From Bugula neritina (Eukaryota; Animalia; Bryozoa), in the NCBI GenBank assembly GCA_964035545.1, contig OZ037771.1, forward strand, positions 7,805,408-7,869,407: DNA of 64,000 nt, read 5' to 3'. Numbering within the stretch: the stretch's first letter is position 1; the number at the start of each line of letters is the position of its first letter. The position numbers and the translations under genes are program-made. Of this stretch, positions 27,906-54,726 are shown in pieces. The notes under the pieces were generated by a model. The model searched no databases. It worked only from the letters and a program-made list of their open reading frames with translations, and was not told the DNA's origin.

Positions 27906-30900
27906 TCACCAACCGAATCGAGTTCTGATACCGTCAAGTAATCTCGGCCTCTCCTCCCACTCACTGATGTTATTCAAAGACGGGTGCTGATGCATGCGTG
28001 ACAGCTTACCTGTGAATCACACAGCTATTTAGTAATCAAGGTAGAGAGAAGAGAAGCAACACTGCAACACAGAACCAGGAGGCAATTGAACTATCACTAA
28101 GCTTGAGAGACAACCTTAGAAGTAACAAAGTACTTAGATAAAGCTTTTACACATCATAAGAAACGGCAAAGAAAACTATTTTGAGGCAATAAATACACGT
28201 TGAGGACCATATTATTAAATGCAAGCAATATCAGTTTATGGTCGGAGTGCTACAAAGTGTACTCACTGGAAAGACTTTGTACACAAGTAAGAGAGAGAAA
28301 GCGCGTTGTAGAGAGATTACTGTAGAAAGGTCGACGGTCTCTGAAAGTCTCAGAACCTCGTCTGGCTCGAGGCCAGCTAGCTAGTCCACCTAGTCCTGGA
28401 GGTGGGGAGGTGCTAGGGTCCTCCTCACTGCCGTCAATGTCTGACAGATGCACATCATCTAGGTCCTGCATGATAAAGGTCATGTGACCAAGAGCATTGC
28501 TAGAGCATTGTGGGCCGACACCAAATCAACCAGTGAATAGTTAGCATATATGCTCAATATAGCTACTTGTATATCTTTCTCTAAGCGTAGGGCCACACGG
28601 TGCGTATTTTTGCAGACAAAAATTTGCTGCACAATTAGAAAAAGGTGTCCTCTGTACAACTTTCCGTCAGTAAAAGCGAAAAAACTATTAGCTAATAAGA
28701 TTTGGGTTTAACTTTACTGCTCGCCTTGTTTCTACAGCTACATGTTCGGGATAAATTGAATTTTCATTTTTAACTCTCACTCGCTTTCAATAAAACACAA
28801 CTTAGTGGAATGTAGCACTGAATTAGAAAAAATGGGCTCGCTAAATAACCATGCCACCCAATTAGGTGACGACAAAAAATATTTGCACTTGTTGTAAATT
28901 CTTGTACAGTAGACACCTTTTTCTACTTGTGGTGCAAATTTTTGTCTGCGAATATACACACCATGTGGCCCTACGTTAAGTTGTTGCAAGCATTTTTTAC
29001 GCAAAAACTAGGAGTATTAAACTCTAACTGACAAGTAAACATTTTCCTAATTTCCATGCAGAAAATATCTGTTTCAGTATTTATTGAAACAGTGTCAATG
29101 CGAAGCATCGTAAAACGTTATAAAAAAATTGAGTGACATAACTTAGGAGGTAGGTGCAGAAATAGAGAAAAGCCTGTGTTCTAGATTAAACTTGTAGCAA
29201 AAGAAGTCAGGTTCAACTCGAGTCCAAAGTCATAACTTAATAAAAAAGTTAAATAACTTGGGCTAATAAAATTTCTCCAATACTGCACCTAAATGTAACT
29301 TGGAAAACAGTTCTAAAGGAATGAAATGACTGTAGCTTGATGGAATCAGACAAAGACTAACTGACTAATACTAGTGAGATGATACCAGACAATCCAGTTG
29401 AAGGGTAGAATTAGTACTCACATCGTACTCAGCATAACTACGATGCATAACTCTAGATGAAGGAATTTTGAAACTTTCTTTGGATGTAGTTTGCTGGAGT
29501 TGAGCAGGCGCCTGGTTGAAAGTGACTTCATCCTCACCAACAGTTGAGTCAACTTCCACTACCATAGATTCGTCGTCTGTTTCGTGGTGAGTCAGAGATG
29601 TCATTGGTAGAGGTCTGGCACCAGTTGCCGTATCGAGAATAGATAAATCTACCTGTATGATATAAATCTACCTGTACAATACACGTCTATCTGTGTGAGA
29701 TAATCAAATGCTGGTTATTGGCATATCTCACTTGCCTGTGTGAAACATAGATGATGAATCAGAAGAGTCACAGGAAAAAACTCATGGGTAGGCGATCAAT
29801 AAAATACTAGATTATCTTAGCTAGTAAGTCACTTCCAACTTTTCTCAATAAGAATACGGTAACACACCCTTCCCCCCATACTTTGCATCAATATAATTGA
29901 TCCTCTGCCACATATGAATAAGCCCTTAGCCTAATATAAAATGCCCTTACCATCAGAGTGTCTAACTGGGGTAGTGACTATAAAAATACACTCAGTCACA
30001 GTAGTTGCTGAACGATTGTACACATAAAAGACTATAAAATAAAGAAAAGTTTCACCACAATCCATCCACACACCTGGTTGTCGCCGGTCTCCATGTCAAC
30101 CTCAGCGGAGTCAGCGCTGCCACACTGAGAGAACTGACTCTCGTCATCAAGTTCTTCGAGATTAGCGTGAGAGTGAGAACCTAGGAGGGAGCTAGCATCC
30201 CTGATGGACGCCTCACTACACTCCACTATCATGCTGTCGTTCTCACAGTCGTGTGTGCGCAGTGAGCGGGGAACCTGCAGTTAGATGTGGAGCAACTGTG
30301 CTAGCAATCTGATCAGCTAGTACTAGTGTGTATGGTGCGTACAGTACATATCAGACAGCACATGTATAGTAAACTACGCAGTGTACATACAGCACGTCAT
30401 ATGTACTGTACATACCACACAGTGCATACTATACGTATGCATTGTCTACACAGCATGTAGTACATAGGGTATATACAGTATATACTGCATAGTGTACGTT
30501 ACTCTAATTTTTCTAGGTATGTACAGTATGAGTAGTCATGCCTCCTGCTGTGTAAAGAACATGCTGCTTCTAATCAAAATAGTATCCAATATTGTACAAA
30601 ATAATATATTCTACAATAAAGACGAACCAAAACCTGAGGCTTTCTAATGATATGATAATTTCTAGGCAGTAAAAGACTGGGAAAGTATAAAGGCAGTTAG
30701 CACAGCACACTGAAACTCGGGCATCTTGATATATCGCAGTTTAACTGGTGACAAACCCAAAACCACACAACTTCATTACTATAACTATTACAAACCAAGA
30801 CTTACTCTGCCTAATATGTTACTTACAGAACTAAAACCACTCGTCGCAATGCTGTCAAAATCACCAACAACAACTGGTCTGAAATCAATCTCTGACGTGC

Positions 30901-33900
30901 AGGGAGGTACTTCCAGCGGAGCAGCTCTACCCACTACCTCTACTCGGTGCTCAGCCGGCAACTGAAACACACGCACTTGTGTGACGGTTCTCAACAAACT
31001 TTACATGTTCGACAAATATGTTTAGTTAAATACATACTACTTTTGTACTTTTTATAAACGAAAAAAAAACAGAGAACAGAAAAGACGACAGCAATGTAAA
31101 GGATCTGTTCAGGTGAACTGCATGCAACATAATATCAAGTAGTGTAAGTGATAATCGGTGGCAGCAATACAGCATAAAATTATTTATTGTCAGTTGTAGT
31201 TTGACTTCGACAAAAATCATGAAGTTCATCTTCTTAGCGTTGAACCAATAAATGAGAGACAAGTCTAATGGAGAGATCCTTCAAACCGATGTCATAGTTG
31301 TCAGTTCTAAGGCTTTGAGCTAATTTAAAAATACAGTTTTGGAAAATGATGCGATTTCAACTTAGAAAAGTTTTTTCTAATTATTTAGTTGGCTTTTATA
31401 CGAAAAGTTTGTTTATTTATTGTATTCAATATAAAACCCTTTGATGTATTTTATATTTTAAAACATCTTTACATGTAAACCACTTTTAAATAGGAGACTT
31501 TAAAATACTATATCAAGTATTGCAGCATAAAAGAAACAGTGATATCCATATGGACTGCCCCTAAATAGGGTAGGCAATTAGTTCTTGGGGTTAAGCCTGC
31601 AACTAGTTCTACCAGGGAATCTACACTCGACATATTTATTCATGGCAAATTAGACAAAATCCTGGCAAGACCTGATCACCTTGATAGAGGCTAAAGAGAA
31701 GGAGGGGAGGCTAAAGAGAAGGAAGGGAGGCTAAAGAGAAGGAAGGGAGGCTAAAGAGAAAGAGGGGAGGCTAAAGAGAAAGAGGGGAGGCTAAAGAGAA
31801 AGAAGGGAGGCTAAAGAGAAGGAAGGGAGGCTAAAGAGAAAGAGGGGAGGCTAAAGAGAAAGAGGGGAGGCTAAAGAGAAAGAGGGGAGGCTAAAGAGAA
31901 AGAGGGGAGGCTAAAGAGAAAGAAGGGAGGCTAAAGAGAAAGAAGGGAGGCTAAAGAGAAAGAAGGGAGGCTAAAGAGAAGGAAGAGAGGCTAAAGAGAA
32001 AGAGGGGAGGCTAAAGAGAAAGAAGGGAGGCTAAAGAGAAAGAAGGGAGGCTAAAGAGAAAGAAGGGAGGCTAAAGAGAAGGAAGAGAGGCTAAAGAGAA
32101 AGAGGGGAGGCTAAAGAGAAAGAAGGGAGGCTAAAGAGAAAGAAGGGAGGCTAAAGAGAAGGAAGGGAGGCTAAAGAGAAAGAGGGGAGGCTAAAGAGAA
32201 AGAGGGGAGGCTAAAGAGAAAGAAGGGAGGCTAAAGAGAAGGAAGGGAGGCTAAAGAGAAAGAGGGGAGGCTAAAGAGAAAGAGGGGAGGCTAAAGAGAA
32301 AGAGGGGAGGCTAAAGAGAAAGAGGGGAGGCTAAAGAGAAAGAAGGGAGGCTAAAGAGAAAGAAGGGAGGCTAAAGAGAAAGAAGGGAGGCTAAAGAGAA
32401 GGAAGGGAGGCTAAAGAGAAAGAGGGGAGGCTAAAGAGAAAGAGGGGAGGCTAAAGAGAAAGAAGGGAGGCTAAAGAGAAGGAAGGGAGGCTAAAGAGAA
32501 AGAGGGGAGGCTAAAGAGAAAGAGGGGAGGCTAAAGAGAAAGAGGGGAGGCTAAAGAGAAAGAGGGGAGGCTAAAGAGAAAGAAGGGAGGCTAAAGAGAA
32601 AGAAGGGAGGCTAAAGAGAAAGAAGCTGAACAGGTAGCAGTTATGAAATTCGAATTCCAAAGAAGCGCCTAATAAATGAAGAAAAACTCAGAAACAGAAG
32701 TTATAGGTGCAGTCAGCAAAGAATGGTTAAAAATGTTTTAGCAAAATTTTACCGGAGCTGCTGGTAATTTAAGCTCCTCCATAGCCGGGCTGCCTCGGCC
32801 ACGTATTTTAACTGTATCCTCTTCACCCATATCATCATCCTGGATAGCGGTGTAGTCGTGCTCCACTGGCTCTCTGTGCTCTACAGACAGTAAGGGGCCA
32901 TCCATAAATTATGTCACACTTTATTCAGCACTTTTTGACCCCCCCTCCCCCCCTTGTCACAAAGTGTCACGCTTATATGACCCCCTCCCCCCCATGTGAT
33001 GTCACACAGATTATGTAAACGCCCTTTTAAGATTAAATACTCCATACAAAAAGTACTGATTGAATGGTTTATGTTTAGTAATGATTACAGGCACAAAGTT
33101 CAATATTTATGAATGCAACTTTTTAAGAACCTAAATTTATTCAGTGTATCATTATTATCCAATGACAAGAAAATCATAAACATTATTGAAACCATGCTTG
33201 ATTTAATAAGGCAGGTCATAAGTTCTGGCCTATAACTGCTATTTTTACTGCCTCAGTAGTCAGTGGTATTAAAGTTCCACTAGAGCATGAAGTCTGTTTT
33301 TATTGTGCTTTATATTGACAAAAAATACATGTATTTGATGTTTTATGTTCAGTATTAATACATATCTGAAATATTTTGTTTTGGTAAAATATTTGAAAAT
33401 GTGACATCACACATATCTACCCTCCCCCCCTCCCCCCTGTCACAAACTGTCACACATGAGGGTACCCCCTCCCCCCCCTTGAGCGTGACATAATTTATGG
33501 ATGGCCCCTAATCAACATTGATAGGCCCTCCTATACGCCCTACAGTATCCTTTAGTTACAATTATAGCAGGTTACAGGTTGCTCAATAGGGAGGAAGTCA
33601 TTGGTTCAAACCCCGACAAAGGCTATTGGTGATGTTAGGAAGAGCATCCAGCCATAATTGCTCCTGTGCCCCATCTGAATAATTCCTTAACCCGAATTAA
33701 CAAAAACCCCTTCCATCTGGGGTTTTCTCACAGGAATGGTGACTATAAACTTGTGTGAGTTTTACAGGTTGCTCAAGGAGAGCACAGGTTCACACAAACC
33801 AATTTTATCACACAAATAACTTACCTGATTGAGAGTAAAACCCAGAAGAATGGTCACTTAAAAGGAAAGGAAGATCAATGCGATTCTTGACTAGAATCTC

Positions 33901-35273
33901 CTGGATGTCGGGTATACTTTGATCTTTCGCCAGTTGTTGGAGTTTGGCTGCATACTGCTTTTGAAGAAGCTCAACTTGAGCAGCTCCTTCAAGAATAATT
34001 ACATACAAAAAGCTACAACTAAGGACTACATTCCCTAAATGAACATCCAGTTGGGTTCACTTGAATCAGTATATTCTTCACTGATGTTGCTAAAATTTAA
34101 GTGTTGCAAGGATTCAAGTCTTCTACAGTAAAAGCCACAAACGTAACTTGAGAATATTTCAAGAAACTATTATTGCACTTAACTAACAAGTGTATAACTA
34201 CAGAAGAAACCCCACCACACAGAGGTGGAGGTCACTTGAAACTCGAAAACATAAAATATGAACACGGCTTACCAACACATAATGAACATAACATAACGAA
34301 TACAAAATGTTATTATAGTGACAATATTTTATAATTCAACAGCAACCTTTCCATCATTTTTCATCACAAATAAATATAAAAACATACCAGTTATTTCCAG
34401 CCTTCTCTTTTCAAATTCATGTTTAATATTATTAATTTCCTTGACATAAGTGTCGGTAATACTGTGTAGTTCAGCTTGACGACGTTCCCTGTCCATACGC
34501 TCAATGAGTTTAGGCTTTATAGTGTTTACCATTGCTGTCCGACTCATCGCAGAGGTTTCCAAATCACTGATACAAACTCCTTGCAACATCTACAACATAG
34601 CATTTAGTACGAACTTAAACGTTGCTGACTCAAAATACATACAGGAAGTTGTGGGAGGAGCAAAACATCAACGTCGTGAAAGGTGTAAGTCTAGGGCAGA
34701 GGTGGGCAACTGAGGGCCCCAGGGCCACCTGTGGCCCTTTGCCGCTTTTTCAGTGGCCCTTTTAATGCTTAAGATAAGTAGCAATTATTATTATATGCAT
34801 TTATATTAGGTTTGGTGACAAATTATTATTATAATAAAATCTAATATGTGTAAAATCATGAAGCCCTTCGTTTTGGCTGACTTCTGAACTTGGCTCCCAT
34901 GCAAAAAAAGTTGTCCACCCCTGGTCTAGGTGGTAATAGTGAACGTGCAGGGTCAGTTGGTGTTAACTAGTTATCCCAAGTCAAGTAACAATCAGTTACC
35001 AACCTAAGAAAACACACTACCTTGATGTAGGTTGGTAAGGATTTCATTGTGTTCCTATCTTCAAATATGGGAACATATTTATCACCACCTTTGTTGCAAA
35101 TACTGTTGGTAAGGGCCTGATTACTATTAAATAAAGCCATTGGGTCGTCTAACAAATCTTTAGTGATGAGTATTAACATCAAGGAACATCTGAAATATAA
35201 TATTAGTAAGTTAAACCAAGAGTCTGTTGTATAACTGAGTTGTGATATATTTATATGTATGTATGTATGTATG

Positions 35274-35331
<58 letters not shown>

Positions 35332-35764
35332 GAAGGCGCTTATAATGCAGTAAGCTGGCTACAAATGAGAAAGGAAACACCTAAACATGGTAAACAGTAA
35401 ATATATAAAACCAGTAGAGTAAACTTCAACAGTGCCACTGTGCCATTCACACGCTCTTGAAAATTTACCAGAAGACATACCAAACACAGAAGCTTTGAAA
35501 AGATTTGTTTCACGATTATATTTATTTGTGTGGATAGGCTATATACATAGTCGGTAGAAGATTTTACCTGCTTAAAGCATCTTCCATAGAATCAAACACT
35601 GTGCCAATGGCAAAGTGTTCTACAAAGCTGGCAACTTTTGGTGTTTCACCAATGTCTTTCTGGAGCTCTAATATTATATCTTGAAGCTTTTTGGCTAGCT
35701 GCTTTGATTGCTCAGAGCTACTATGGTAAATTAGAACATCCCAATGACTTTGTCCCATAGCCAT
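27906..35764 (-). CDS. Cytoplasmic TIR-domain protein, TRIF/TICAM-like TIR followed by a coiled coil and a disordered acidic/Ser-rich tail; 10 coding exons
   Basis: Exons 35568-35764 (WDVLIYHSS...ASFVEHFAIGTVFDSMEDALSR), 35021-35189 (CSLMLILITKDLL...NQALTNSI...YVPIF), 34388-34589, 33825-33986, 32753-32880, ~30806-30962, ~30074-30274, ~29386-29652, ~28266-28465 and ~27906-28010 (stop). GT-AG junctions in compatible phase. No signal peptide or TM segment. Confidence 0.8.
28583..28978. mobile_element. MITE family A, copy 2
   Basis: AAGCGTAGGGCCACACGGTGCGTATTTT ... AATATACACACCATGTGGCCCTACGTT; colinear with 8884-9308. Confidence 0.85.
29148..29290. mobile_element. MITE family B copy, reverse orientation
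   Basis: GGTAGGTGCAGAAATAGAGAAAAGCCTGTGTTCTAGA ... ATTTCTCCAATACTGCACCT. Confidence 0.7.
31685..32625. repeat. 20-bp purine-rich minisatellite, ~47 copies of GAGGCTAAAGAGAARGARGG
   Basis: Exact 20-bp period; units vary only at A/G positions. Confidence 0.98.
32894..33508. mobile_element. PIF/Harbinger-type MITE
   Basis: TIR GGGGCCATCCATAAATTATGTCAC ... GTGACATAATTTATGGATGGCCCC with TAA TSD (32891-32893 and 33509-33511); C-rich subterminal repeats. Confidence 0.9.
33587..33761 (+). mobile_element. 5'-truncated SINE copy with 15-bp TSD
   Basis: SINE core and tail flanked by TTACAGGTTGCTCAA at 33572-33586 and 33762-33776. Confidence 0.88.
34697..34923. mobile_element. Short hAT (Charlie-like) MITE
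   Basis: TIR CAGAGGTGGGCAAC ... GTTGTCCACCCCTG; 8-bp TSD GTCTAGGG / GTCTAGGT (one mismatch). Confidence 0.85.
35255..35328. repeat. (ATGT)n/(AT)n microsatellite
   Basis: Direct inspection. Confidence 0.95.
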
Positions 35765-35939
35765 CTTTCAAAAAAAGATAAAAAATGTTGCAGTGTAGAT
35801 TTAGAAGTTGGCAGAACACAACAGAGATGGTTTTCTGCCTAAGACAAGTGCAAGAGAAGTGCATTGAACAAAACATTCTACTCCACATAGTATTGGTTAA
35901 CTTGTGTAAAGCATTTAACACTGCGTTTAGAGTAAGGCT

Positions 35940-36970
35940 TTAGTAGGTCCTCAAAAACTTCGGCTGAACAAATAAGTTCACGAGCATTATTAAAGCTCTT
36001 CATACAGGCATGCAAGAAGGTGTAGTGGCGAGAGGTTTTATCTCAAATGATTTTGCAGTAACAAATAACGTCAAGCAAAGGTGTGTTGTGCTGCACCAAC
36101 ACTATTCTCACTTCACCTGTCAATCATGCTTGAAGTTGCCTTAAAGACAGTTCAGAAGGGGCATATTTAAAATAGAAAAAAACAAACCTGTTTGATGGAC
36201 CTCACTTTAAGTTTAAAACCAAAACCACTACTAAGTTAGTGAGAGAGTTGCTATTTGCTGATATCACTCTAATAACTCATCATCTTGCTAATATACAAAC
36301 TATAGTCAACAGAAATGCTTACGCTGCAAGAAAATTTAGGCTTGAGATTAACATCAAGAAGACAGAATGCCTCAAGCAGCACCCAAATTTACAAAGTGGA
36401 ATATCTCAGCTAAACACCTTAACCATCAATAGAGAACTGCTGTAAAGTGTAAAACTTTTAATTACCTAGGAAGTATAGTGACTGACAATTCTAAATTAAA
36501 TAATAAAATCCAACTGAGAATAAATAAAATGCTAGTGTAGTGCACGTAAAATTGAAGACTGGACTTTTGACAAACCACCATTTCTCAGACAAATTCAAAC
36601 CTTGTGTCAGGTGCTACAACATTCGCCAACTTACTGTATGGGGTTGAGAGCTGGGACATATACAATTTGTAAGCCTAGTTTATGTGACATATACAGTCAA
36701 CCATGGATATCTCTTGGAGAAACAAGATTACAAACCATAAAGATCTAAAGATAATTTACTATCTTAAAAATCTATCTATCTTGAGATGGCTAGGACATCT
36801 AGAAAGGATGGGCCAAAAACGTTTACCTAAACAACTACCAAATACACAGCTGTAAGCGAGCAGGCATAACCAAGAAAAGCTGAGTTTTAAAGACACTGTG
36901 AAGCAAAATATGAAGATGGTATATATGGACAAAGATAATTGGCAAGAGAAAACTAGGTAAAGAAATGGTT
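35940..36970 (+). mobile_element. Decayed RTE-clade LINE reverse-transcriptase fragment
   Basis: Frameshifted motifs VKQ.C...APTLF, VRELLFAD, LEINIKKTE, FNYLGS, TLLYGVESW, LRWLGHLERM and RLPKQL, typical of RTE ORF2. Confidence 0.85.
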
Positions 36971-39900
36971 TAATATGTATGAGCAGACAAAAATAAAACA
37001 GTTATTAGCTATAAATAAAGCTGTATTTTCTGTAGTAGGAAGCATTCTAATTTCTACTGATGTATGTTATACTTGAAAGTCTTTTAGTTCTACAATAAAA
37101 ATATATCTAGACTGATGCAAACTATGCATACTACTGGTGTTGTGCTTCAAACCATTTGGTTAAAGTCTCAGCAGCAAAAAAAATATTTCCTTACATTTTT
37201 ACTCATATTAGAAAATACTGTTGAAGCTTTATGGAAAACAAAATAAAATTTAAGGTATATTATACTCCATGATTGCCTTATGTTACAATTATTATAAGCA
37301 TAACCATAAGTAAGCGTGAAAATAAACTTTAAGCTTTAAATTTTGCTACCATAATAATCATAATGCACTAACAGTAAATTTCATACTTATTTTGATTCTC
37401 AAACACTATCAGTATGACTATCAAAATGACTCTAATAAGAGTATGAGTATCAATATGCCACAATAACAATGACGCCGGTAGTTATTGAATAAATATTTAT
37501 AATGATAATTATTCCTTTTATTATATAACAATCAGATTTACTAAACTATCTTTATGATTAGTAATTATATTCATTAGTAACACTAACCAGTAACTGCAAT
37601 CAAAATTTGAACCACAGTATAAATATTTATATTAGTTTAATGAAAGTATCAGCATCCTTTATTTATAACCATTTTTAGTTACTAGGAACCCTAATACTGA
37701 TAAGTATCTTATTAGTATCACTGCTATCACTATGAGTATCAGCATCACTAAATCTAATGAGTATGAGTATGACTATAAGTATAAGTGTATTTTAAACATA
37801 TTAATATTATAATCATACTGATACACTGACACCGATAGTCATCTGTCATACTGATACTCATAGTCATACTCATAGTGATAGTCAGTACTCATTACTCATT
37901 ACTGATGGCGATGCCAATGCGCGTTAATTAAATCTATATCAATATATATTCAATTTTATAATATCAAATTCAATATAAATATAATTAATATCATATTAAA
38001 TTTATTGCATGGTTCCGTTATCATAATAATAACCATAAAGATTATTTAAATATTAACAATAATATTATTTATAATATAAATAATAATATTAATACTAATA
38101 GTTATTATAATTTATAATTATAATATTAATAATTAATTAATCAATTCATATCCAAACTCAACAAAAAATTCAAATTCAATAATCTTAATCTAGATTGGCA
38201 CCATCATCATAAATCATTCATGATTATGACGTTCACCATGACCATCAACATGGTCCATTTTCATCATTTTAACTTTGAGTTCATCACTCAGTGACGGTCT
38301 CGTAGTGATGGACAAACTCAAAGTAGAATTCAAAATCAATGCAAAATGAAAATGAAAATCAAAATGACAATTTTTAATTTTATGTGCCATGCAACTGTAA
38401 TGTATGCTTATGTATATGAATTTGAAACCCGATTGAAGAAACGTTAATATTGGTAAAAATATATTTAGTAAACATTTGGTTTATGCACATAAAAATTTCA
38501 ATTTAGCAAGGCTTTTTATACGGTTTTGGATTATCTCATAGATAAAATCCTGGTACCTCTGGTAATCTACAAGCACTGTTAGCCGTGAAAAGCGGATAGG
38601 TGTGAAAATCGCTTGATGTAGCAGAAAACTTGGGAGCCGCTGAATGCAGCAGCTAGTGTACCTTCAATTTCAATACCTTCAATTTAGATGTATACAATTA
38701 GTGCACTCAGTGACTCTAAATCTGGTGCTATGTCTAGCGATCTCTAATGCTAAAATAGTTTAGTTATAACTCATAAAATTTGCTAAGCTTGTCTACTGGC
38801 TATTAGCAATAACGAGCCCATGCTCGTGCATTTTTCTATTTCATACTAGTAATATTTTAGTAATAGTATTAGTACAAGAACTAGAGGTATAACTCACAGT
38901 CACTATGTGCAACTCACTAGGTGTAACGCTAACTTGAATCAGAGTGATCTATATCAACTATATCTATATGAACTTTAATCCTTTGACTTGAATATCTTTA
39001 CGAATATAAGTGAAATTGATGAGTAACGATATATGTTTAATAATATTTATATTTCATTATGATTATTATCATTATCAATTATCATTAATATTATGCATAC
39101 TGATTATCATAATGATAATCATAATCAAATTCAATAGCAGTATCATTAACGTTACGATATTGATAATTGAGCCCGTTACTTGGAGTTGGTTGTAATTATC
39201 AAAATGATTGTCATAATCATTACGATTATCATCATGGTGATGATTGATGATAATATTAGTTGATATATCCATATTCATATTGAAAATGCTCCGTATAAGT
39301 TTTAATATTACTATTACTATTAGTGTAGCAGTAATACTAATAGCTATAAGTATAAGTATTACTATTACTATTAGATTTAGTGAATTACTATTCAAATTTA
39401 ACCCACACTATGAGTATAACTATATGTTATAAATATAACTATAAGTATAAGGCTAAGTAATTATTATTATTATTAATCTTTATCTTATTTGATGATCATT
39501 ATCACTTTATGATTGTGATTACTCATTATCTATTTTACTTTTATAGAATTACTATTAGAAATGATTATTGCCATTTATTCAATTACATAGAATTATGTCT
39601 TTATCATATTGATATTCATTGTAAATATAATCATAATGATATACATTACACTTGGTGTTACTGTGTCAACAACAGGTGTATTGAGTATGTGTTTTGCTGT
39701 TAAAATTTAATAATAGTCTGGCTTTTTAGGTTTGAAGTTTAGAGGTAAAGTTGATTTTAAAACCAGTCATCAAGTTATTTTTGACCATGTTGTTGGTTAA
39801 ATGATCATAGTACTAACAGTAATACTATGTAATTCAATGTAATTATTTGAAGTTTAATTGTGACTACTCATCAAGTGGCCCGTTAGTGTTCCTAGAGGCA

Positions 39901-40284: not shown

Positions 40285-43200
40285 ATGGGAGATGTTGTTA
40301 TTGAGAATACCTCTAACCCATTTACTCAGGACCGTCTCACCCCTGAACACCTAGCTTTGCTATTTCCTCCTAAATTCTATCAAAATGACGATTCATTAGC
40401 CTTGCATCTATCTGGTGAGTTATCACTCTGTTACAGTACTAAAGTTGTGTAACATATATGACTTTTTAAGCAGCAGTACTGTAGATTTGAAATTATGGCT
40501 GATTGCTGGAATTTCATTAAAGCACTGTTGAGTTGTTATGAATCAATGAATTGATCTGAACTAAGCATTTTGGTCTTGTAACTTGTGAAAATTCAAAAAA
40601 ACTGGCCCAAGCGGATGATAATCGTCAAGTCAGGTTAGCAGGTCACCTTGAGTTCACTTGATTATTTCAAAAATCGACTCTGTTCAGAGAACTACACTCA
40701 CATCAATAAGTACTTAATCCCAGCTCTGTTGTGTTTGCAGAATCATGTCTGGTAGAATCAACTACTTGGGATGGGAACATTGCTATTGGTGACATGGCCT
40801 TTTGGTTGAAGGTGCTCAGCACTCCTCAAACTGAGTATCTGAAGCAGCAGAAGAGAGCTTTCAAGTCGAGAGTTGCTGAAATGTGTCGAGATATTCGAGT
40901 GAAAGATGTAGGTGTAGGCCAACTTCTGGTTTATATTTATCTGCCAATTTCTTCATCTCCCAACCAAAGCGATAAGGGTTCACTGCAATAGTGAGCTTTA
41001 TTTCTATTTCAAGAACACGATGTAGTTGTTCATATGCATGTTGTCTTACTAAATAATTAGAGGCTCATTGTTGCCTGTAGAGATCCTTGCAAACTGTTAG
41101 AACTCATTGTAAGTATGTCATAGCCTCTCTACTCTAAAACAATTATTGTAAATGATGACTACGGTAGCATAAAATAGCAAGTTTACAAAATACATGTTTT
41201 AAAGGCCGCTGTTGTAAAACTATTCCTGTATTTTCAGGGTAGGCCAGTGGCTAAGAAGTTGCATACTGAAGTTCAAGATTCTCCACCTAAACCTGTTGTC
41301 CAGCAATTGAAAGTGACCACATCCAATATTTTGATGAAACCAAAACCCACTCTTACTACAGTACTTGTTGTTGATAGCTCTGCTGGTATGTTATCTATGT
41401 GACGTGCTCACATGAATTAGTTTATGCTGTTACCTAGCAGCTTGAATGATACCTCCAATGTTGTAGTGGCATGAATTTCATCTCAACAGAATGTGAATAT
41501 AACTTGTGTGGTCATACCTACATGTTTAATCTTTTCAGTATTATTTTGTGGTTCACAATCTCTCAACACTTATTTTTAAAACAATAACATGATTTAACAC
41601 TTTTCACACTAAATTCTTGTTTGCAGGTGAAGACCAGCCAAAGCCAAAGGCCTCCAACCAGGTAAATCTCAAGTGTAGTGTAAATGTTGCTGACTTGTAG
41701 TTTCGAGGAGTTGCTTTCTCTTTAGTTCTATATGCTTTATGTGCTCACAAATCTTAATTTTCAACACCGATAAGATTTTATGGCTACACAGTAATAATAA
41801 AAAGTTGGTGACAACATATTGTTACTTCAACCTAATTTTTGCCCAAGCATTTTTATCTGGTTGTTGTGGAGAAACTCTGCGTTATTCAAACAGTAGAGAG
41901 GTTTTTTATGATTCAAGATGGCCATAAATTCATAACATTTTCTTTGTATAAAGCCATTTCAGCAGTTTAAGTGTTTTGTGGCTAAACTAATAAAATGTCC
42001 AAGCATGTGCATTTATTATTAGAAGACTTGTAAGAACATTGTCGCTTCTTTATTAGATTTTGTCTATCAATGTATTCAAACACCTCAAACATATTTCATG
42101 TATAGCCTTAGAATCTATACTATGGTTGTTGCAGATAACTCAACTAACTCTGGATGCAGTGGCCAGCCCGACTCCCGGGTTTGGCCTCAACTCCTACAAG
42201 TGTACCACGTGTGACTTTGCGACTGACACGCGAGAGAGACTCAACCACCATCAGAAGATGGCTCACGCCGCGGAGCGGCCCTACAGCTGTGAGTACTGTG
42301 ACTACACCTCCAAGTATTCCTGGAACATCAAAACCCACGTGGATAATGTTCACTTGAAGACCAAGAGGTTCAAATGTGCTCACTGTGACTTTGCATCTCC
42401 TCAAGCCTGTCTCCTTAGACGCCATGTGAGCCGAGTGCACACCAACGCCCGCGATGTCAAGTGCCAGTACTGTGATTATCGCACAAACCATAAGGACGTC
42501 CTCAGACGCCATGTTCACATGAAGCACACCGGTGATTTTGATCATAAATGTCCGTACTGTGCTTTTGGCAGAGATGCTAAATACGAGGTAGAAGATCACA
42601 TCAATGCAGTTCACCTCAAGAAAGTCATATATCAGTGTTCGGAGTGCAGTTTTCAGACGTATCGTAAAATCACTCTAAAAAGTCACCACAAAGACCATGC
42701 GTCTAAGCCGATGCTTTCCTGTCCCAGTTGTAACATGAAAAGTATATATCCATCTACTCTAGCCAAGCATATCCGAGATAATCATCCGCAAATTCCCATG
42801 CCGGAAGAGCTTAAAGATGTGAGACATAAGATTGAGCAGAGGAACATTGCGTCTGGAGATGTGGATTACACTCCTGTGATGATGTGTAGGTGTAAACTGT
42901 GTGATTTCACCTGTGAGAAAATCGTGACACTAAAAGCTCATGTCAGAAAAGCACACAATGCGAACTCACGTCATAGCTGCCCAGTTTGTAAAACTGGCTT
43001 TGCAAATAAACGTAACCTTACCAATCATATGACTAAACAACATAACATAAATAAAAACAGTCTATCAAAGAATCAATTCACAAGTAATAAGACTGGAATC
43101 GGCGACGAAACAATCAATTTAGTAGATTCTGTACCCTTACCAACTTTAAACTTAACTGACTCTGTCCAGACAGAGGGTACACTGACAGATGTCGACAGCG

Positions 43201-43397
43201 CTGTGTGTGGTACACGCAGTTTAATGACGACAAATAATATTGCTGCCAGTGAAGGAGAATTCTCTGTGACAGGTCCTAATCCTCAGGTTGTTCTAAATTT
43301 TCATCCAAAGCAATCCAACAATTTGAATAGCCAATCAAATGACACCGTCATATTTATTGAGGAGACAGAAACACTGCTAGATTCAGTTTCTCACTAG
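40285..43397 (+). CDS. C2H2 zinc-finger protein A (9 fingers) with unrecognised N-terminal domain; 6 coding exons
   Basis: Exons 40285-40414, 40741-40907, 41061-41108, 41238-41385, 41627-41661 and 42135-43397, phases compatible. Fingers CTTC, CEYC, CAHC, CQYC, CPYC, CSEC, CPSC, CKLC and CPVC. Confidence 0.9.
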
Positions 43398-51996: not shown

Positions 51997-54726
51997 ATGG
52001 AAGAAAAAACTGAGCTACTGAATCCTTATGCCACTGAGAAGTTATCTCCCAAACATCTGGAGTTGCTTTACCCTGCAGTTTTCTATAAGTCAGATGAGGA
52101 GTTGTCTCTCCATCTCTCACGTAAGTCGTATGAGTCATAGGGTATGTTGCATGGCTAACCAGTTGTCTAAATGCGCCTCAAGTTGTGAATTGCTAAAAAA
52201 TATCACCTGAAGTAGAGTTTCTGTAGGCTTTTCACTTTATATTATGATATAACAACTCTGTATGTTGTTTTAAAACGCAGTAGAGATTGATGGCTCAAAT
52301 TTGATATGCATTAACAATTATTCTGAGAGATTTATAAATAAATATTACAATATCTAATGACAAGATTAACTTGGCATTGCAGAGGCATGTCTAGTGGAGC
52401 GATTGTCCTGGGAGGGGGATAAAGCTATTGGCGAGACAGCTTTCTGGCTGAAGGTGCTCAGCACCCCTCAGACTGAGTATCTGAAGCAGCAGAAGAAGCT
52501 CTTCAAACTCGCAATCACTGAGAGATGCAAAGACATATGCGATACTTATGTAAGTTATTACTGGGCAGCTGTTTTGAACTGATATTCCATTGACTAATGA
52601 ATCAGTCAAAATGCATTCTACAGTAAGCAAATGCTGAAAGGATTTTTGTTTGTTATACATACATTTACAATTATAAAAAGGCACAGGTTGCTCTGGCATC
52701 TATTGACGTATTGCAAAGTTCACTGCATCTATGTTTTTATGTAACAATAGAATAGTCCGGGTCTTGGTCTGCCACCGGAGGTGATAACTCTTAATATTCG
52801 GGGCAAGCAAGGAGAGCCCAAGTCTCCAGCCGCTGTCCCCATGTTGGAAAAGAGGCCGCAGTTGAAGCCCGTCATACGAGTGACTACTGGTGATAATGGC
52901 ACTCAGGTCGGGGTGCTGACCACAGTTCCGGGTGCGTATTGTAGACTGTGATCTGTGAGTTCAGCTTAGCCTGTGTTAGTAGAAAATCATGAATAGAGAA
53001 GGTAACTCACAGTAAGTACTCACAGTAAGTACTCACAGTAAGTACTCATAGTAAGTACTCATAGTAAGTACTCTGTAACTCACGGTAAGTACTCTGTAAC
53101 TCACAGTAAGTGCTCTGTAACTCAGAGTAAGTACTTACAGTATGTACTCTGTAACTGATGTGTATTCTGTAGAGACTGTGGACACTCCGGTCACAGATCA
53201 CATAATAACTGACAACGAGTGGGAACTTATTGAGAAACACCTCAACGAAGGCGTCACTGAGGCTGCTGCTGCCGCCGCTGTTACTCAGGTCAGCATTGTA
53301 AACATTTACTTGACTCACTTGATAATGATGAGTGTTTATTGTGTTGCATGGAAGTAATAATTTCCGTCACTTAGTCTAGTAGTGCATGGGTGACTGGGTT
53401 ATACTCTGCAATGTCCTCTGTAAGAAGTTATATTGATTGTATTTTTCTGTCTCTCTTTACATGTTTATCTCAGGTGCATGTTGTGTATTTCTGTTGCAAT
53501 AACCATCAGCTTTGTGTGTGATTTTGTAGGCGTCGGATTTCGCCAGCCCCACCCCAGGGTTTGGTATAAAGACATACAAGTGCCGGCATTGTGAGTTTGC
53601 CTCTGACAATCGAGCGGGGCTAAACAGACACCAGAAGCTGAACCATGCTGACGAGCTGCCGTACAGCTGTGACCGCTGTGACTACACGTCAAAGTATGCG
53701 TGGAGCGTCAAGACCCACATCGACAGCGTTCACCTCAAGAGCAAGAGATTCAAGTGCCCTCTCTGTGACTACGCGACGTCGCAGGCTTGTTTCTTGAAGC
53801 GGCACACGCTCAGACGTCACAACCCGGAGAAGGGGGCCTACAAGTGCACGTACTGTGACTACGCTGCCCACCACCCCAACAGTCTCCAGCGCCACATCAA
53901 TCGACAGCACACGCATAATTTTGCTCACAAGTGTCCGTACTGTGACTTTGGCAGAGACTGCAAGTACCTGGTGGAGGACCACATCAACGCCGAGCACCTC
54001 AAGAAGGTCATCTACCAGTGCTCTGAGTGCAGCTTCCAGACGTACAAGCAGAGAGCTCTCAAGAGTCACCACAAGACGCACGAGAACAAGAGTGTGATGC
54101 AGTGCTCTGAGTGCGAGTTCAAGTCTGTCAGCGTGTCCGGCCTCACCAAGCATATGAAACAAGAACACCCGGACGTTGACGCTAAGGCTACGGTTGCTGG
54201 AACTAAGGGCAAGAGAAGTCTAGCCTCTGTCGTCCAGCACGACGGTGACGAGTACACAGCCGTGGTGATGGGGAAATGCAAGTACTGTGATTACGCCAAC
54301 GAGAATCTGTTGAAGCTAAAGGCCCACGTAAGGAGATACCATAGGAAAGGCAACGCCCAGTGTCCTCACTGTCCATTCACTGCCATCACCAAGATCTCTC
54401 TGGCCAAACACATCAATAACAAACACGCTGCTCTAGTGGCCACTACCGATGATGCCGCAAAGGATGCTTCTGCCAACGTTCTTCTTAGTGCTGATGCTGT
54501 CACCAACAGCGCTGTCACCGAGACCTTTGCTGCCGAGGGTATCGCTACTGCAGAGGACGCATTCTCAGCGAGTATCCCTGCCGGGAGTTTGGGTGAGGTC
54601 GCAGTGGAGGGCGGGGGTACTGTGACAGCGCAAGTAGCGTCAGTTGTGAATCAAGCTGATCTGCCTACAGTCTCCTTTGTCGAGGGGTCGGATGGTAACA
54701 TCATAGTAGTTCAGAGTGCAGAGTAG
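51997..54726 (+). CDS. C2H2 zinc-finger protein B (9 fingers), paralog of protein A; 5 coding exons
   Basis: Exons 51997-52120 (an in-frame ATG also lies at 51979), 52383-52549, 52751-52931, 53173-53288 and 53530-54726. Shares the N-terminal domain, the ASPTPGFG motif and finger sequences (HKCPYC.FGRD.KY.VEDHINA.HLKKVIYQCSECSFQTY) with 40285-43397. Confidence 0.9.
53000..53155. repeat. AGTAAGTACTCAC-type minisatellite in ZF-B intron 3
   Basis: 13-bp units, then ~21-bp units, running up to the acceptor at 53172. Confidence 0.88.

Follow-up and report, generated by a model that had tools for sequence, protein, structure and literature searches.

A divergent TIR-like domain at the N-terminus of a spliced Bugula neritina gene, with a hint of TICAM-type affinity

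The 64,000-nucleotide window analyzed here (the whole stretch, from contig OZ037771.1 of the bryozoan Bugula neritina) contains, on its minus strand between positions 27906 and 35764, a gene of 10 exons and about 575 codons (1728 nt in the phase-consistent model). It encodes a soluble protein of about 575 residues that begins with a domain which, all evidence taken together, very probably has the TIR fold. Judged by its sequence, this TIR looks more like that of the TICAM adaptors TRAM and TRIF than like any other type, and the family to which the gene belongs carries a weak but specific hint of TICAM-type affinity. By architecture, the protein is not TRIF or TRAM.

What shows that this is a gene? 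Logan contigs from four runs were placed on positions 32700 to 38600, and the splice joints 35568/35189, 35021/34589, 34388/33986 and 33825/32880 are present in RNA contigs of runs X1 and X6, which come from two studies. The joint ends read CT..AC on the plus strand, which is GT..AG on the gene strand, and because the contigs skip introns with such ends, their source was spliced RNA and the gene is expressed. The locus is a real, transcribed and spliced gene and not a chance open reading frame (ORF), since the homologues of exon 1 (n = 8, 42-59% identity) and a near-identical sibling lineage keep the intron positions. It is a single-copy gene in its 216-Mb genome. Exon 1 (35764-35568) encodes the peptide MAMGQSHWDVLIYHSSSEQSKQLAKKLQDIILELQKDIGETPKVASFVEHFAIGTVFDSMEDALS and exon 2 (35189-35021) the peptide CSLMLILITKDLLDDPMALFNSNQALTNSICNKGGDKYVPIFEDRNTMKSLPTYIK, the two being linked by a split arginine codon; the N-terminal residues quoted in the initial annotation are these two exons, read from the minus strand exactly as written there. 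RNA confirms the coding sequence over exons 1 to 5, whose joints are seen in spliced contigs, and exons 6 to 10 stay at the level of a model, with which the 3' end implied in the initial annotation (TGA at 27906-27908) fits through the phase-consistent exons 9 and 10. The exons are as follows.

35568..35764, minus strand: exon 1; ATG at 35764, donor phase 2, RNA joint 35568/35189; read as strand A (DVLIYH), helix A, strand B (KVASF), a BB-type loop (EHFAIG, without proline) and the start of helix B.
35021..35189, minus strand: exon 2; RNA joints and family alignments; read as strand C (LMLILIT), helix C (F..NQAL..SI), strand D (KYVPIF) and helix D up to YIK.
34388..34589, minus strand: exon 3; RNA joints 35021/34589 and 34388/33986, alignments A3 and A6; probable strand E (MLQGVCISDL), then a long charged helix (LVNTIK..L.ER.DRE...) in which a coiled coil is taken to begin.
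33825..33986, minus strand: exon 4; RNA joints; second half of the helical or coiled-coil region.
32753..32880, minus strand: exon 5; RNA joint 33825/32880; the acidic tail begins.
30827..30961, minus strand: exon 6, tail; model only (open frame, AG/GT boundaries, consistent phase).
30074..30274, minus strand: exon 7, tail; model only; very acidic, with 16 D+E against 3 K+R.
29422..29652, minus strand: exon 8, acidic tail with a VVEVD patch; model only; acceptor 29652 is the best phase-0 option.
28267..28465, minus strand: exon 9; model only; the alternative is read-through to TAG at 28250-28252.
27906..28009, minus strand: exon 10; model only, in phase with the exon 9 donor at 28266; ends in the stop codon TGA (27906-27908).

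At 95-99% similarity to the genome, and with an in-frame insertion of 6 nt near 35035, the RNA comes from a sibling strain or species; the JGI contig L029 carries the same variant as this RNA lineage. Between the genome and the RNA lineage, 26 codons differ over exons 1 to 5 (14 synonymous and 12 non-synonymous changes), a balance that points to moderate purifying selection. In exon 2 of the sibling lineage, two residues are inserted in frame (SLRTPTYIK) and a cysteine is replaced by methionine. In L029 (positions 1-40), the gene's first ATG (35764) reads ATA, so the start must be the second methionine (ATG 35758; MGQSHW...).

The gene belongs to a family, with homologues on at least seven other short public contigs and in the sibling lineage. 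A phmmer search of exon 1 against 1.84 billion cluster representatives returned five exon-sized family ORFs of 46-59% identity, together with three repetitive false matches, and no full-length protein. Profile-based word searches added three further exon-1 fragments and several exon-2 fragments, again exon-sized and from genomic contigs; a word-index protein search with exon 1 alone gave no match. A metagenome scan for a spliced, contiguous copy found none and yielded only one more genomic copy, L008, and the exon-1 profile A1 was too variable for such a scan. The members (P0001, P0003, P0004 and P0007-P0011; loci L003-L008, L028 and L029, of which L007 is the same as L008) lie on genomic contigs, taken in part from marine metagenomes (Tara among them) and in part from DNA runs assembled by Logan. 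Source runs include SRR25569774, SRR25569781, SRR25569782, SRR25569785 and SRR22824305. All homologue contigs that reach far enough carry exons 1, 2 and 3, with introns at identical codon positions. The consensus of exon 1 is [WFY]D.L[ICV].H ... K[VI]A[SN].. E[HDYL]F..G..F.[SN]M[ED]D[AC]L.R, that of exon 2, the best-conserved part of the family, is CS.M[FL]IL[IV]T ... F..N.[QH][AV]L..SI ... KY[VI]P[IV][YF] ... YIK, and that of exon 3 is [MV][LIM].G..[IL] ... V[NK]T.K.

To understand what kind of domain the first exons encode, we ran all profile searches, folds and alignments exon by exon, which limits each of these tests and weakens the negatives that concern the whole domain. One positive result came from a five-sequence profile of exon 2 (A4), searched against 177,635 PDB sequences. 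Seven were listed at E<=10, and three of these are TICAM2/TRAM constructs (9DKI, 9DLG and 2M1W; E 0.72-0.89, 13 bits), TRAM being the only TIR protein that A4 matched. Family positions 2-33 align without gaps onto AWTILLLTENFLRDTWCNFQFYTSLMNSVNRQ, which is strand C and helix C of TRAM. The match begins 56-64 residues into the constructs and exon 2 here begins at residue 67, and the match is therefore colinear with an exon 1 that supplies strand A, helix A, strand B, the BB loop and helix B. Taken as a blind match, an E of 0.8 would carry no weight, but TICAM was the family named beforehand. Nine distinct searches of the PDB gave about 15 chance-level matches, and by our estimate a TICAM would be among these with a probability of about 1e-3 or less, and a TIR of any kind with one of about 1e-2.

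A different kind of search, based on features of the ESM language model, gave for exon 2 ten best named matches that are all TIR or TIR_2 clusters (score 0.83), and for exon 1 noise. AlphaFold2 models of the separate fragments (pLDDT, the predicted local distance difference test, 67) place in exon 1 a strand at 9-14, a helix at 18-38, a strand at 43-48, a loop and a helix at 60-64, and in exon 2 a strand at 4-7, helices at 10-19 and 24-32, a strand at 38-41 and a helix at 45-50. This order of elements fits the βA-αA-βB-BB-αB and then βC-αC-βD-αD of a TIR, an order that is also common to other folds.

Could the gene be a true orthologue of the chordate TICAMs (TRIF, TRAM and the amphioxus bbtTICAM), derived from a TICAM lineage that predates chordates and with an altered architecture in bryozoans? 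We consider this unlikely, although some points favor it. No exon profile reached a solved TIR other than that of TRAM, and the family has features of a TICAM flavor, namely a histidine that ends strand A, E[DH]F in the BB loop in place of RD, and a strand C of the 'ILLT' type that ends in threonine, when set against the TRIF boxes in the literature (PMC6831525, PMC7075850) and the TRAM residues of the PDB alignment. However, TRIF itself (2M1X) was not matched in the PDB searches, and the protein lacks the TRIF N-terminal domain, RHIM, pLxIS, the BB-loop proline and an N-myristoylation site. In the phmmer search of exon 1, all relatives lay on short contigs that seem to be closely related, and none in other phyla turned up among the 1.84 billion representatives. 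TIR trees are poorly resolved, and convergence in a few loop residues is plausible. The literature places the origin of TICAM in chordates (PMC9440496, PMC6043800, PMC9334734) and confines TRIF-type TIRs to gnathostomes (PMC7075850).

It is likewise doubtful that the family is the protostome counterpart of TICAM, with a TRAM/TRIF-type adaptor already in the bilaterian ancestor and surviving in bryozoans with its TIR at the N-terminus and a coiled coil and acidic effector tail behind it. If it were, the 'MyD88-independent' branch of Toll adaptors, now held to be a chordate invention, would be older than chordates. The initial annotation had suggested that the protein may be part of an undescribed MyD88-independent innate immune signaling branch, which is pure inference. 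Its statement that the domain tracks TICAM better than it does MyD88, TLR or SARM TIRs agrees with TRAM being the only solved TIR that was reached; the resemblance to TICAM consists of one 13-bit match and a likeness at the level of motifs. A colinear resemblance to human TRIF may also run from strand A to helix E.

A number of results weigh against reading the domain as a TIR of any type. Pfam TIR, TIR_2 and SEFIR gave no match at E<=10 on exons 1-9 or on any homologue. Six-frame genome scans with PF01582 and PF13676 found 9 and 22 other exon hits, this locus not among them, and since the scans match other TIR exons and pass over this one, the domain must be far from canonical TIRs. Profiles of exon 1 (from 6 or 9 sequences, whole or C-terminal half) and of exon 3 (whole or N-terminal part) reached no TIR in the PDB, nor did the four-sequence exon-2 profile (A2) or single exon-2 sequences, and hhalign of A1 and A2 against one TIR_2 exon of the same genome returned nothing. 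The TRAM match, with an E near 1, was seen with a single alignment, an ESM score of 0.83 is no more than a lead, and Foldseek on both fragment models gave only generic strand-helix-strand matches, with the 'cryptic TIR' of BCAP (5FOR) at rank 35 and without significance.

These results would suit another flavodoxin-like α/β domain of unknown function, its likeness to TICAM being due to chance. All standard profile tests are negative, the sole TIR match in the PDB (E about 0.8) lies in the range of obvious chance matches such as RNase, ferritin and BRD4, which appeared at similar E in the same searches, and a strand-helix-strand order is common to many folds. Nevertheless, we think this explanation quite improbable. 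Two independent methods, both applied to exon 2, indicate the family that had been specified beforehand, and the TRAM match falls where it should in the domain and follows the order of the exons. Moreover, TRIF-type TIRs, with a BB motif that departs from RD..PG, also score weakly with canonical TIR profiles (PMC7075850). The TIR call of the initial annotation has indirect support from the match of A4 to TRAM, the ESM clusters and the order of elements in the fragments, whereas Pfam TIR and TIR_2, the exon-1 and exon-3 profiles and Foldseek were negative or uninformative about it.

Is the TIR-like domain truly N-terminal? In all nine loci an in-frame stop lies 2-31 codons upstream of the start methionine, without an in-frame ATG upstream (in this gene the stop is a TGA two codons before the start of exon 1), and in every family sequence (n = 9) the methionine stands 4-13 residues ahead of strand A. 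Because the methionine is conserved and preceded by stops, an N-terminal domain at the very end of the protein is a feature of the family. The initial annotation, which had placed the TIR at the extreme N-terminus, was right in this respect, and RNA contigs also end near the ATG. That upstream coding exons (for example for a transmembrane segment or an ectodomain) are missing from the model, and the N-terminal TIR is an artefact, is very improbable indeed: the sequence before the start (tttttatctttttttgaaag, followed directly by ATG) resembles a splice acceptor and an RNA contig extends past 35768 by 19 letters that do not match, which makes a 5' exon possible, but apart from the upstream stops and the constant methionine, an AG directly before the ATG is absent in seven of the nine loci (present in this gene and L006 only), and the RNA contigs of two runs stop 2-19 nt from the ATG. 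A 5' untranslated exon is likely; a 5' coding exon is not.

The TIR-like domain starts at residue 8. The replacement of the BB-loop proline (FAIG), pointed out in the initial annotation, is correct and extends to the whole family: proline is absent from the loop in all nine sequences, which have E-[HDYL]-F-x-x-G. They share E, F and G with the E-D-F-x-x-P-G of TRIF, and one member has EDF. The position of the catalytic glutamate of NADase TIRs, which we take to be four residues after the tryptophan of helix C (Q in TRAM), is occupied, in a column anchored on TRAM, by N, L, H, Q or A in the five exon-2 sequences, and the domain is therefore expected to be a scaffold and not an enzyme. The family N-termini (MAMGQSH, or MGQSHW in the sibling lineage, MATLRD, MSRSH, MQDQF, MEKPRE and MAGAGG) are not conserved, and none fits the N-myristoylation pattern (MG...S/T).

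Beyond the TIR-like domain, the charged helix of exons 3 and 4 has the look of a coiled coil, and probably is one; in Pfam, exon 3 gives only weak noise of the coiled-coil type. Exon 4 ends in a conserved (I/L)DL..LL(F)SD patch, its conservation with L028 being weak (E 0.015). The remainder is an acidic tail of about 330 residues that is probably disordered: exons 5-9 have 59 D+E against 23 K+R, are poorly conserved and contain no hydrophobic segments. No transmembrane segment was found (the maximum 19-residue Kyte-Doolittle value is 1.19), no Death or other relevant Pfam domain on exons 1-9, and neither the RHIM core ([IV]Q[IVLC]G) nor L.IS in exons 1-9, so that hydropathy, Pfam and motif scans bear out what the initial annotation had said of the absence of a transmembrane segment, Death domain, RHIM and pLxIS. 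Of the order it had given, a TIR followed by a coiled coil and a long disordered tail, the N-terminal domain, the helical stretch and the acidic tail were all seen, and the coiled coil and the disorder are probable. Two stretches of the tail are candidate short motifs. The EPVEHDY of exon 5 would fit both the TRAF6-type P.E..Y and a caspase-type VEHD; L028 has EAVEHDE and thus shares only VEHD. The second is the VVEVD patch of exon 8.

Probably, then, the protein is a non-enzymatic TIR scaffold that continues into a coiled coil and then into an acidic tail. The working model that we infer takes in the TIR fold, the coiled coil, the disorder and the whole signaling role. Residues of about 8 to 150 (exons 1 and 2 and the start of exon 3) would form a very divergent, non-enzymatic TIR of the scaffold type, to be followed by a helical stretch of some 90 residues, probably a coiled coil, and by the tail of about 330 residues. 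If the protein works as TIR adaptors do, its TIR would bind to those of activated receptors or of other adaptors, the coiled coil would pair or multimerize the protein, and short motifs in the tail would recruit downstream factors.

The introns of the gene contain two sizeable repeats, the first of the kind of a miniature inverted-repeat transposable element (MITE).

32893..33509, no strand assigned: MITE-like insert of 617 bp in intron 4; its terminal inverted repeats measure 28 nt and are 96% complementary.
31687..32625, no strand assigned: 940-bp minisatellite in intron 5, 47 copies of the 20-bp unit GAGGCTAAAGAGAAAGAAGG, with 96% matches.

The MITE-like insert ends 12 nt upstream of the exon-5 acceptor and lies outside the protein; it is multi-copy and probably transcribed, since each of the four runs has contigs over it, with small indels. 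A short repeat in intron 4 (33488-33760) reaches a summed contig depth of about 224,000 in run X1 and has many loose ends, and is therefore a very abundant dispersed element; it contains no tRNA according to ARAGORN and has no Rfam match at E<=0.01. Rfam gave nothing on the locus other than sub-threshold matches to mir-297 and mir-1277, which we rejected as low-complexity artefacts of the (AT)n/(ATAC)n microsatellite of intron 1 (35245-35341).

Outside the gene, and just upstream of it, open frames on the plus strand at 36200-36900 resemble, in our reading of the ORF list, reverse-transcriptase fragments of the long interspersed nuclear element type (...RWLGHLERMGQKRLPKQL). Two long single-exon C2H2 zinc-finger ORFs, also on the plus strand, lie at 42060-43397 and 53794-54726 (445 and 310 aa) and are clearly related. 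Elsewhere, contig C17 of genome G000 (L020 and L021) has uninterrupted ORFs of 497 aa and 609 aa (the latter cut by the end of the locus) with an N-terminal TIR_2. The longer one is a 1550-aa open frame in the genome scan and continues into a P-loop NTPase-like part (GASGAGKSS). These ORFs look bacterial in style and lie near the contig start, and the contig may be that of a symbiont or a contaminant.

Reviews and surveys know of no TRIF or TICAM homologue outside chordates (PMC6043800, PMC9440496, PMC9334734, PMC7075850), and the gene is a concrete candidate for the question of whether a TICAM-type adaptor predates them. Catalogues of invertebrate TIRs that are based on Pfam and SMART miss at least one family. 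Should the gene be only a lineage-specific, orphan TIR scaffold, it would be an ordinary addition to a very diverse class.

How does the protein compare with known TIR systems? Toll-like and IL-1 receptors have a signal peptide, an ectodomain and a transmembrane segment ahead of the TIR, unlike this protein with its upstream stops and low hydropathy (1.19). In MyD88 a Death domain precedes the TIR, whereas here no exon has a Death-fold match in Pfam and the TIR-like domain is N-terminal. The NADase TIRs (SARM1, plant and bacterial) differ in their catalytic glutamate of helix C, which is not present here. With the orphan TIR proteins of invertebrates (OrTIR, ecTIR-DC) the protein shares a soluble TIR and the absence of any other recognizable domain, but the catalogues of such proteins were built on the Pfam and SMART TIR matches that overlook this family. 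TIR-only proteins are numerous in molluscs and other marine invertebrates, with 17 in Aplysia (PMC9334734). In the literature we found no description of a protein that combines a TIR at the N-terminus with a coiled coil and an acidic tail.

The resemblance to TICAM2/TRAM consists of 32 ungapped residues that span strand C and helix C and lie equally far from strand A; among them, W, L, T, L, D, F, L and S are identical to at least one family member (the tryptophan is leucine in this gene). Both proteins lack the NADase glutamate, and both are soluble and of the adaptor type. Unlike TRAM, the Bugula protein has no myristoylation motif, no AEDD site after strand A and no Pro-Cys in the BB loop. 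TRAM is a protein of about 235 residues with its TIR at the C-terminal end; the Bugula protein has about 575 and carries a coiled coil and an acidic tail.

In TICAM1/TRIF, the boxes of the TIR are 'YN', 'EDFQVPG' and 'IFAR' (PMC6831525), and the TRIF group (group 37) is marked by a BB motif of E-D-F-x-x-P-G in place of the usual x-R-D-x-x-P-G and is reported only from gnathostomes (PMC7075850). The family is like TRIF in a box 1 of an aromatic residue and D/N followed by h-h-I-x-H, and in E-[DH]-F-x-x-G as against the E-D-F-x-x-P-G of TRIF (PMC6831525, PMC7075850); both are soluble adaptors with long non-globular regions. The Bugula protein differs in having no TRIF N-terminal domain, RHIM, LxIS, BB-loop proline or box 3 'IFAR', and in the N-terminal place of its TIR, which in TRIF lies in the C-terminal half. 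The earliest TICAM described is bbtTICAM of amphioxus, which signals to NF-κB without interferon, via RHIM and RIP1 (PMC6043800). Compared by description only, bbtTICAM lacks the proline-rich regions of vertebrates, as does the Bugula protein, and it differs in its RHIM, of which no core is found here. By analogy with bbtTICAM, an NF-κB-type role is the kind that would be proposed for this protein.

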